Assembly: GCF_006345805.1 (NCBI RefSeq)
Contig: NW_021836522.1
Coordinates: 1-23,803 of the forward strand
Length of the DNA stretch: 23,803 bases
Origin: Octopus sinensis
Lineage: Eukaryota
Reading direction: 5' to 3'
Within the stretch, counting starts at the first letter, position 1. Every line of letters starts with the position of its first letter. The position numbers and the translations under genes were made by a program. Of this stretch, positions 5,776 through 6,930 are shown piece by piece. A model generated the notes under the pieces. The model was not told where the DNA came from. It worked only from the letters and a program-made list of their open reading frames with translations, and did not search any database.

Positions 5776-6930
5776 ATGACTAACTTGCAGGCCTGCAACA
5801 GACGAAATTGGTCTGATAACGAAATTGATGTTTTAATAAACACATGGCTTTCTCTTTCCCAACAGAAAATCTAAATGTCTTGTGTTTGAATGAGATTGCC
5901 GAAAAAACATCACAGTGGTCAACACACGATCCGTCAAACAGATTCGTAGCAAGTTGAAACATATCGAAGTATCTTTCAAACTGATAAGAGGCCATTATGA
6001 AAAGCTTTTACATATTTTCACAGTTCAAGAACAACAACAGCTAGAAAATCAGCAGCCACAACAACAACAACAACAGAATGAGCCACTCCTGGTTCCCAGC
6101 ACAATGGCTGACCCTGACATCGGTCAGGCACAACAACAACAACAACAGCCACAGCAACAAAAACAACAACAACAGCCACTCCTCAACTCTAGCTTACTAG
6201 ACGATTCACTAAATGCCAGTATCTTTTTACCGCTCTCACAGCAACCACCACAATTATCATCATCATCATCACCACCGCTGCCACCATCGTCTTCTATCAC
6301 CAAAAATACCAACAGAAAACCAAATAAGAAACCACTGCCCTCTTCCCCACATCACCACCTCAATACTACTGCAGTAACAAAAACTTAAAGAAACATAGGA
6401 AGCAGAATGCGCCCCCCACGGCACAAACAAGAAATCCCCAATATGCCGCTATTCACTGCGCCAGAGACTCTGCACAAAGTGACTGCATCTTCACGCATCT
6501 ACCCGGCACTAGACGCACTACCGGCCAAGGCCAAAGCACGCATCCCACAATAACATCAACACCACCAAATAGTAAATCGAAATTCAAAACACACACAACT
6601 CGGAGTCCCAAAATCTGCCGGTATTCCCAACGTGAGAGAACATGTCTACTGAGTGACTGTCCCTTCACTCATCTTCCAGGGACCCGACGCACAAACAGAA
6701 ACGGGCCTCAAGCCAACACACAAACCTGAATAACAATAAAATAGAAACACACCATGCTGCAGTAATGCTGGTCCAGTCTTTTCAGGAAGACACAAAAACA
6801 ACAACAACAAAAGTGGAAACTACAACCCTATCCAACAGTGCAACCACACCTCCAGCCAAAAACTGCTCCCTAAGCAGGAAAATTCTTTTTTAGCCATGTT
6901 GAACATGGCAAAAGAGATACACAAAAACAT
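5776..6930 (+). CDS. LINE ORF1 (frameshifted): Myb/SANT-like domain, poly-Q/Ser-Pro low-complexity region, two CCCH zinc fingers
   Basis: ATG at 5776 (AAACATGA). Two 1-bp corrections in homopolymers give RRNWSDNEIDVLINTWLSLFPTENLNVLCLNEIAEKxITVVNTRSVKQIRSKLKHIEVSFK. ORF 5915-6388 holds the poly-Q. C-x8-C-x4-C-x3-H motifs at 6444-6498 and 6616-6672. The end is approximate. Confidence 0.7.

Follow-up and report, generated by a model that had tools for sequence, protein, structure and literature searches.

Background

The proteins encoded by open reading frame (ORF) 1 of long interspersed nuclear elements (LINEs) with an apurinic/apyrimidinic endonuclease (APE) are regarded as RNA chaperones or packaging proteins, and the domains recognised in them are of the RRM, CCHC, coiled-coil/L1-like, PHD and esterase kinds. 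Among site-specific APE LINEs, R1 and TRAS for example, endonuclease-determined specificity is the rule. In PIF/Harbinger elements a Myb-like protein binds element DNA and recruits the transposase. The subject of this article is a 23,803-nucleotide stretch of Octopus sinensis DNA (NCBI RefSeq assembly GCF_006345805.1, contig NW_021836522.1, positions 1 to 23,803 of the forward strand; "the window", to which all positions refer unless another contig is named). It is repeat-rich and carries a 4.6-kb LINE on its plus strand, from 5452 to about 10077, together with two further copies. The reading of this element that we favour, and to which we would give a probability of about 0.45, is that of a CR1-like LINE whose first ORF opens with a Myb/SANT-like domain, the domain docking the ribonucleoprotein particle (RNP) on target DNA or chromatin, in this case (TA)n.

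Among retrotransposons the nearest functional precedent for a target-binding Myb module is R2; there the 28S rDNA target is bound by zinc-finger and Myb domains at the N-terminus of the protein (PMC12503042). The PHD-type ORF1 (type III of Khazina and Weichenrieder) is found in CR1-group elements (Metcalfe and Casane 2014, PMC4120745), and that survey of ORF1 in CR1, L2, Rex1 and Jockey elements records RRM, CCHC, coiled-coil/L1-like, PHD and esterase modules, with no mention of Myb, SANT or CCCH. Microsatellite-specific LINEs named from Kojima and Fujiwara 2004, as cited in PMC4640811, include Dong in (TAA)n, Togen in (TG)n, and Kibi/Koshi, Waldo and Mino. The first coding region of the window element matches no described ORF1 type, be it RRM with CCHC, L1-like, PHD or esterase. 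Full-text searches of the literature, with Repbase and subscription journals outside their scope, turned up no LINE ORF1 described as having a Myb/SANT-like domain, nor any (TA)n-associated, CR1-like family whose first ORF is of the Myb/SANT-like kind.

The domain and its identity

The first coding region starts at ATG 5776, the first Met past an in-frame stop. The start codon and the Myb/SANT-like domain occupy 5776-5998 of the plus strand (residues 1-75 of the corrected peptide, with the domain core, residues 9-75, at 5800-5998), and they are distributed over three frames: the frame of 5776 reads MTNLQACNRRNWSDNEIDVLINTWLSLSQQK up to codon 5866-5868, the frame of 5778 reads NLNVLCLNEIAEK over 5868-5906, and the frame of 5777 continues with NITVVNTRSVKQIRSKLKHIEVSFKLIRGHYEKLL from 5906 on to a stop at 6386-6388. 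The first-pass annotation, made from the letters of the window, had arrived at the domain by two single-base corrections in homopolymers, and these are borne out: the three frames join colinearly upon addition of one A to the A4 run at 5866-5869 and one A to the A6 run at 5902-5907. The corrected window peptide, as used below, is the 92-residue product with both A-runs repaired. Placement of the first junction in a T/C run past Trp24 was tried and rejected; it lowers the Pfam score from 25.2 to 19.8 bits and fits the homologues worse, because Gln29 is conserved. The domain is split over three frames because the window copy is degenerate or carries assembly indels.

Pfam finds a single family in the corrected peptide, Myb_DNA-bind_4 (PF13837), matched over profile positions 1-71 with 25.2 bits (E 2.2e-5) at a gathering cut-off of 27 bits; the uncorrected frame-1 piece alone gives an E of 0.048. 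Over the first coding region as a whole, Pfam detects Myb_DNA-bind_4 and weak CCCH signals, and no RRM, PHD, esterase, Transposase_22 or CCHC domain. A phmmer search of 1.84 billion representative proteins with the corrected peptide returned eight matches, namely P0121, P0122, P0125 and five fish proteins that combine a TINF2_N domain with three to six or seven Myb_DNA-bind_4 repeats. (P0121, the top match, was discarded as a repeat-driven artefact.) P0122, of 157 residues, is 42% identical to the window peptide (E 7e-8), aligns over the whole domain in a single uninterrupted frame, and by itself matches Myb_DNA-bind_4 above the cut-off, with 31.7 bits (E 2e-7); P0125, a short protein of 122 residues, likewise aligns over the whole domain. 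With the corrected peptide or with a three-sequence profile as query, a word-indexed search added no homologue to P0122 and P0125. The start sites of all three homologues lie 11-14 residues ahead of the NWS motif, and in an alignment of 20 sequences W12, E16, W24, Q56 and K62 are invariant, which gives the Trp/Glu/Trp expected of helix 1 and the Gln/Lys expected of helix 3.

A control hidden Markov model (HMM) was built from 17 Myb_DNA-bind_4 repeats of fish proteins (Pfam E down to 5.5e-109), with the caveat that these repeats had originally been found as matches to the window peptide. It scores that peptide at 31.2 bits, compared with a maximum of 10.1 among 2000 shuffles, and it recognises the uncorrected frames in colinear order, frame 1 with 17.5 bits (HMM positions 7-36) and frame 2 with 7.8 bits (HMM positions 55-76). 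Alignment of the three LINE sequences to the fish repeats by hhalign gives a probability of 97.2% (E 3.7e-11). AlphaFold predicts helices at residues 14-30, 36-45 and 54-73 of the window peptide and a fourth, short helix (predicted local distance difference test, pLDDT, 79), and three helices for P0122 (pLDDT 83). The third helix is basic as read from the sequence, with seven Lys/Arg and one Glu among residues 52-72. In Foldseek searches the window model found 2cqr, 2yum, 2jmw (GT-1) and 3zqc at the top, with E values of at least 2 and template-modelling (TM) scores of 0.43-0.52, and the second model found ribosomal L11 C-terminal domains with E values of at least 0.5; none of this is significant. 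A sequence search of the PDB with the LINE profile gave only spurious matches to GCN4 coiled coils. The domain assignment therefore rests on sequence profiles, and on these it is very probable that the domain is Myb/SANT-like, of the Pfam Myb_DNA-bind_4 type, and that it stands at the head of the LINE. The earlier assignment to the Myb/SANT-like class, which had been made from the motif, finds its match in the sole Pfam family, in an intact homologue above the cut-off and in the profile alignment.

Attachment of the domain to the LINE

The intact homologue supplies evidence that the domain is the LINE's own. P0122 is encoded on a 4569-bp contig, L003, in an ORF at 354-827. Past this ORF, L003 continues with a CCCH finger, a Cys-rich tail and an intact ORF2 of 1093 residues with Exo_endo_phos and RVT_1 domains. 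The CCCH finger of L003 is 77% identical to the second CCCH zinc finger of the window element. The reverse transcriptases (RTs) of the two are only 40% identical, and L003 is on that account a distinct and distant element with the same layout. Since an intact homologue stands ahead of a homologous CCCH finger and a LINE ORF2, the domain is part of the LINE itself, not of a neighbouring element.

P0125 is encoded on a short contig, L004, with (TG/TA)n about 55 bp ahead of its ATG; downstream, L004 passes into unrelated, piggyBac-transposase-like sequence. At 118-120 of L004 the conserved Trp codon of the NWSD motif is TGA, yet the database protein shows Trp. The gene caller probably used a code in which TGA specifies Trp, and the L004 copy is likely to be a pseudogene. 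Searched with an alignment of Myb domain, CCCH fingers and tail, contig collections from metagenomes, prokaryotic genomes and viruses yielded no confirmed locus.

It might be held that the likeness to Myb proteins is a chance product of stitched frames, or that 5452-6000 is an unrelated neighbouring element (a danger that the first-pass annotation had itself raised) or a transduced host exon. The region is, after all, covered by only one copy in the window, and its peptide falls under the Pfam cut-off. But on an independent contig a homologue in one intact frame precedes the same CCCH module and a LINE ORF2 that is itself intact. This, together with a score that 0 of 2000 shuffles attains, an hhalign probability of 97% and a (TA)n array that ends exactly at 5451, makes such an origin extremely improbable, and we regard it as already effectively refuted.

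The element, its copies and its relatives

The LINE to which the domain belongs begins with a 5' untranslated region at 5452-5775, directly past a (TA)n array at 5135-5451. Remnants of ORF2 extend over 6970-9900 in at least six frames, with the APE-type endonuclease at about 6970-7750 and the RT at about 8500-9400; pieces of it match Exo_endo_phos_2 (E 4.7e-9) and RVT_1 (E 4e-25) in Pfam. The element ends without poly(A) in two units of a terminal octamer, (ATCAAAGT)x2, at 10058-10073, past which comes a (TA)n array at 10077-10749. The second copy, also on the plus strand, occupies 1573-5135 and is 5'-truncated; it corresponds to the full copy from 6533 through the 3' end with 97% identity and is without the Myb region. 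The third copy is a short 3' fragment on the minus strand, at 12112-12447. Both are flanked by (TA)n on either side. One to three units of ATCAAAGT, and no poly(A), are found at the 3' ends of all three copies, of which only one, the other two being 5'-truncated, covers the Myb region.

Between 1573-5115 and 6533-10060 there are 60 substitutions and 32 indel events, an unusually high indel share, and 10 of the 17 single-base indels between these two copies lie in homopolymers. The ORF2 of the full-length copy is also frameshifted throughout. The indel share and the many homopolymer indels suggest decay, homopolymer errors of long-read assembly, or both, as the source of the window indels.

Assignment to the CR1 group, which the first-pass annotation had offered, is plausible from the ORF2 layout of APE endonuclease and RT, from the octamer 3' end without poly(A) and from a relative with 51% RT identity that has a PHD-type ORF1. 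The RT of the window element is 51-64% identical to those of its relatives, the best named one, at 64%, being a hypothetical protein from the octopod Argonauta hians, a single match that by itself makes a cephalopod host probable. The 51% relative, on contig L011, has an intact 373-residue ORF1 in which a PHD finger (24.9 bits at a cut-off of 24) precedes three CCCH fingers, the last recognisably similar to a finger of the window element. By RT identity the window element is closer to L011, with its PHD finger, than to L003, with its Myb domain. Since the closer relative has a PHD finger with CCCH fingers instead, the N-terminal module looks exchangeable between lineages (Myb/SANT-like or PHD). 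This distribution fits the modular, reticulate evolution of ORF1 described for the superfamily and is compatible with either module as the ancestral one. The contigs around eight RT relatives were examined (L001, L002, L005, L006, L007-L010, L011, L012 and L013, most of them 5'-truncated), and neither tblastn nor a six-frame HMM search found a Myb-like region in them.

The first-pass annotation had spoken of a DNA-binding module that this family had captured. Capture is not established: identity between the window element and L003 is 42% in the Myb domain and 40% in the RT, and because the two diverge in parallel, the Myb domain could be old.

One first ORF or two products

Between the Myb domain and ORF2 the window element has a low-complexity linker, Gln-rich and then Ser/Pro-rich, which runs in the frame of 5777 over 5999-6388 to the stop TAA at 6386-6388; CCCH zinc finger 1 (ICRYSLRQRLCTK/SDCIFTHLPGTRR) at 6429-6520, with a frame change inside the finger; CCCH zinc finger 2 (ICRYSQRERTCLLSDCPFTHLPGTRR), of the form C-x8-C-x4-C-x3-H, at 6601-6693; and a Cys-rich tail (TPCC..AG...IQQCN...NSFLxMLNxxKEI...HHP...CCH and a stop) at 6700-7000, all on the plus strand. 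The tail, with its stop at 6998-7000, aligns with that of L003, including the common "...CCH stop" (window 6830-7000, L003 1282-1444). The tail and the 5' end of ORF2 overlap in different frames, and conservation there is about 54% in the tail frame as opposed to 30% in the ORF2 frame.

Within the first coding region, conservation is highest in the C-x8-C-x4-C-x3-H fingers and the HLPGTRR that follows them. They lie at 6429-6693 in the window, at 930-1010 in L003 and at residues of about 205-290 in the ORF1 of L011; that is, they recur in an ORF1 of the PHD type, as well as being kept at 77% identity by two elements whose RTs share only 40%.

The domain had been placed at the N-terminus of a LINE ORF1. 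The first coding region does open with it; what is not established is a continuous ORF1, in that the Myb frame stops before the CCCH fingers in the window and in L003 alike. In the window both fingers and the tail are in frames other than that of the Myb domain. In L003 the Myb frame stops at 825-827, a third frame bridges the Myb and CCCH frames, and the CCCH frame opens six codons ahead of the finger and has no ATG.

These frames raise the question whether the Myb/SANT-like protein might be a separate upstream "ORF0" product of about 150-200 residues, with the CCCH/Cys-rich segment as a distinct ORF1. Such a protein would act in trans, comparably to the Myb-like protein by which PIF/Harbinger recruits its transposase, and it would fit either of the functional hypotheses weighed below. 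The frames themselves speak for two products, the Myb frame ending ahead of the CCCH segment (6386-6388 in the window, 825-827 in L003) and the CCCH segment lying in a different frame in both elements. The ORF2 of L003, moreover, is intact over 1093 residues, so that it would be somewhat surprising for two frameshifts to have arisen by accident in the first 1.1 kb and nowhere else. Set against this, in both elements the CCCH frame lacks an ATG and opens only 6-13 codons ahead of the finger; the linker DNA aligns poorly, so that the two stops do not line up (similarity between window and L003 is too low for them to be compared); and the window copy is frameshifted throughout, with indels making up a third of the differences between its two copies. 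We take two separate products to be possible, if less likely than not.

(TA)n and a proposed role in the targeting of insertion

All three copies in the window have (TA)n on both sides, which would occur by chance with a probability of about 0.007; the sample is small. Contig L007, from a marine metagenome and 56% identical in the RT, has (ATCACAGGT)x2 and then about 30 bp of (TA)n at 3590-3640, mirroring the 3' end of the window element. The association with (TA)n may be older than the window family, or the element may itself carry (TA)n as part of its tail.

Two further features of the arrays may be recorded. Between the LINE copies a near-perfect foldback lies inside a (TA)n array at 10752-11202, its inner arms (10829-10972 and 10987-11130) 97% complementary and its outer arms (10752-10819 and 11135-11202) 96%; it may be a foldback or a MITE-like element (MITE, miniature inverted-repeat transposable element) that is also in (TA)n. 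The (TA)n array at 11355-12112 has a higher-order period of 33 bp.

The mechanism that we have in mind for the LINE would run as follows. The CCCH fingers and the tail would hold the element RNA, as other ORF1 proteins do, and the basic third helix of the Myb/SANT-like domain would dock the RNP on double-stranded target DNA or on chromatin, here (TA)n. The endonuclease would then nick at (TA)n, and reverse transcription would be primed against the 3' end of the element. The N-terminal module would serve as an exchangeable tether to chromatin or DNA, a PHD finger taking the same position in sister lineages. A targeting role for the domain is put forward tentatively, at somewhat less than even odds. 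The fullest version of the proposal, in which a putative sequence-specific Myb/SANT-like domain, joined to an RNA-binding CCCH module or encoded immediately before it and interchangeable with a PHD chromatin reader, defines a new class of LINE first ORF that tethers the RNP to (TA)n and sets the target specificity of an APE-type CR1-like element, we regard as doubtful.

Several points weigh against docking on (TA)n by a Myb/SANT-like domain, some touching the domain and some its function. The corrected window peptide remains 1.8 bits under the Pfam gathering cut-off, only three members of the family were found across very large databases, and Foldseek gave neither model a significant match to a solved Myb/SANT/trihelix structure. 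No uninterrupted ORF joins the Myb and CCCH parts in the window or in L003, so the Myb domain may belong to a separate product. SANT-type relatives bind histones and not DNA. The window's non-LINE part is itself about 19% (TA)n, which makes three insertions out of three suggestive only, and the three are not clearly independent, perhaps having entered one large array. L007, whose N-terminus is not covered, also ends in (TA)n, so that targeting may be independent of the Myb domain; the endonuclease could suffice to account for it.

That last point can be enlarged into an account of its own, in which (TA)n specificity derives from the APE endonuclease and from pairing of the 3' end with the target, and the Myb/SANT-like domain, owned by the LINE all the same, does something else: binding of chromatin or histones (as a SANT-like domain, comparable with PHD), nuclear import, RNP assembly or binding of the element's own 5' region. 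It would accord with the same 3' octamer and (TA)n in L007, with the PHD finger at the equivalent position in L011 and with what holds generally for site-specific APE LINEs, in which the endonuclease sets specificity. The third helix, on the other hand, is strongly basic, which is more in keeping with nucleic-acid binding than with an acidic SANT surface, and members of the Myb_DNA-bind_4 family are mostly DNA binders. We take this account to be possible, with the odds leaning against it, and retain docking by the Myb/SANT-like domain as the preferred reading.

Other features of the window

A second, unrelated LINE-like element lies on the minus strand at about 15600-19411; from ORF translations only, it comprises a CCHC knuckle at 18899-19411, endonuclease-like ORFs at 18101-18819 and an RT-like ORF at 16911-17351. 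A further ORF with a CCHC knuckle, also read from its translation, lies at 20630-21073 on the minus strand, and a 184-bp tandem repeat is present in 1.9 copies at 22942-23289.

Significance and comparison with known systems

With a Myb/SANT-like domain heading the first ORF, the element extends the list of modules recognised in ORF1. Since it sits in just one kind of microsatellite, it also offers a testable route by which a non-enzymatic first-ORF protein, besides the endonuclease, could choose the integration site. If the proposal is true, it bears on the evolution of site-specific LINEs by module swapping and on efforts toward targeted DNA insertion with site-specific retrotransposons.

The LINE domain may be set beside the Myb_DNA-bind_4 proteins at large, for which the comparison set of PF13837 comprised plant trihelix/GT factors, animal proteins of the MSANTD/ZSCAN20 type and Harbinger-derived Myb-like proteins. 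It shares with them the signature W-S-[DE]-x-E...L-I-x-x-W...I-[AS]-x-K...R-[ST]-x-x-Q-[IC]-x-x-K-[IL]-K and three predicted helices, the third of them basic. It differs in the second aromatic position of helix 2, which is Leu, Phe or Cys in the LINE sequences and usually in a Phe/Trp context elsewhere, and in the replacement by Ile of the Cys of the "EQC" motif. It differs also in its bearer, which is a retrotransposon, with the domain at the extreme N-terminus of the first ORF, where the others belong to host transcription factors or DNA transposons. The likeness to PIF/Harbinger is that in either case a mobile element encodes, beside its enzyme, a small protein of the Myb/SANT-like kind; the enzyme is a DDE transposase there and an endonuclease/RT in the LINE.

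With the CR1-group LINEs that have a PHD-type ORF1, the window element has in common an ORF2 of APE endonuclease and RT and a short-repeat 3' end without poly(A), and it departs from them in having a Myb/SANT-like domain in place of the PHD finger. Like the microsatellite-specific LINEs, its copies are embedded in one kind of simple repeat, whereas most of those described belong to clades with a restriction-like endonuclease or to the R1 clade and the window element is CR1-like. R2, finally, resembles it in a Myb-type helix-turn-helix that is N-terminal in a protein of a non-LTR retrotransposon, and in insertion into one repeated target. R2 has a single ORF, a restriction-like endonuclease and a canonical Myb domain within the RT polypeptide; the window element, in contrast, is of the APE type, has two (or three) ORFs, and carries a domain of the Myb_DNA-bind_4 type in a separate, non-enzymatic first ORF.
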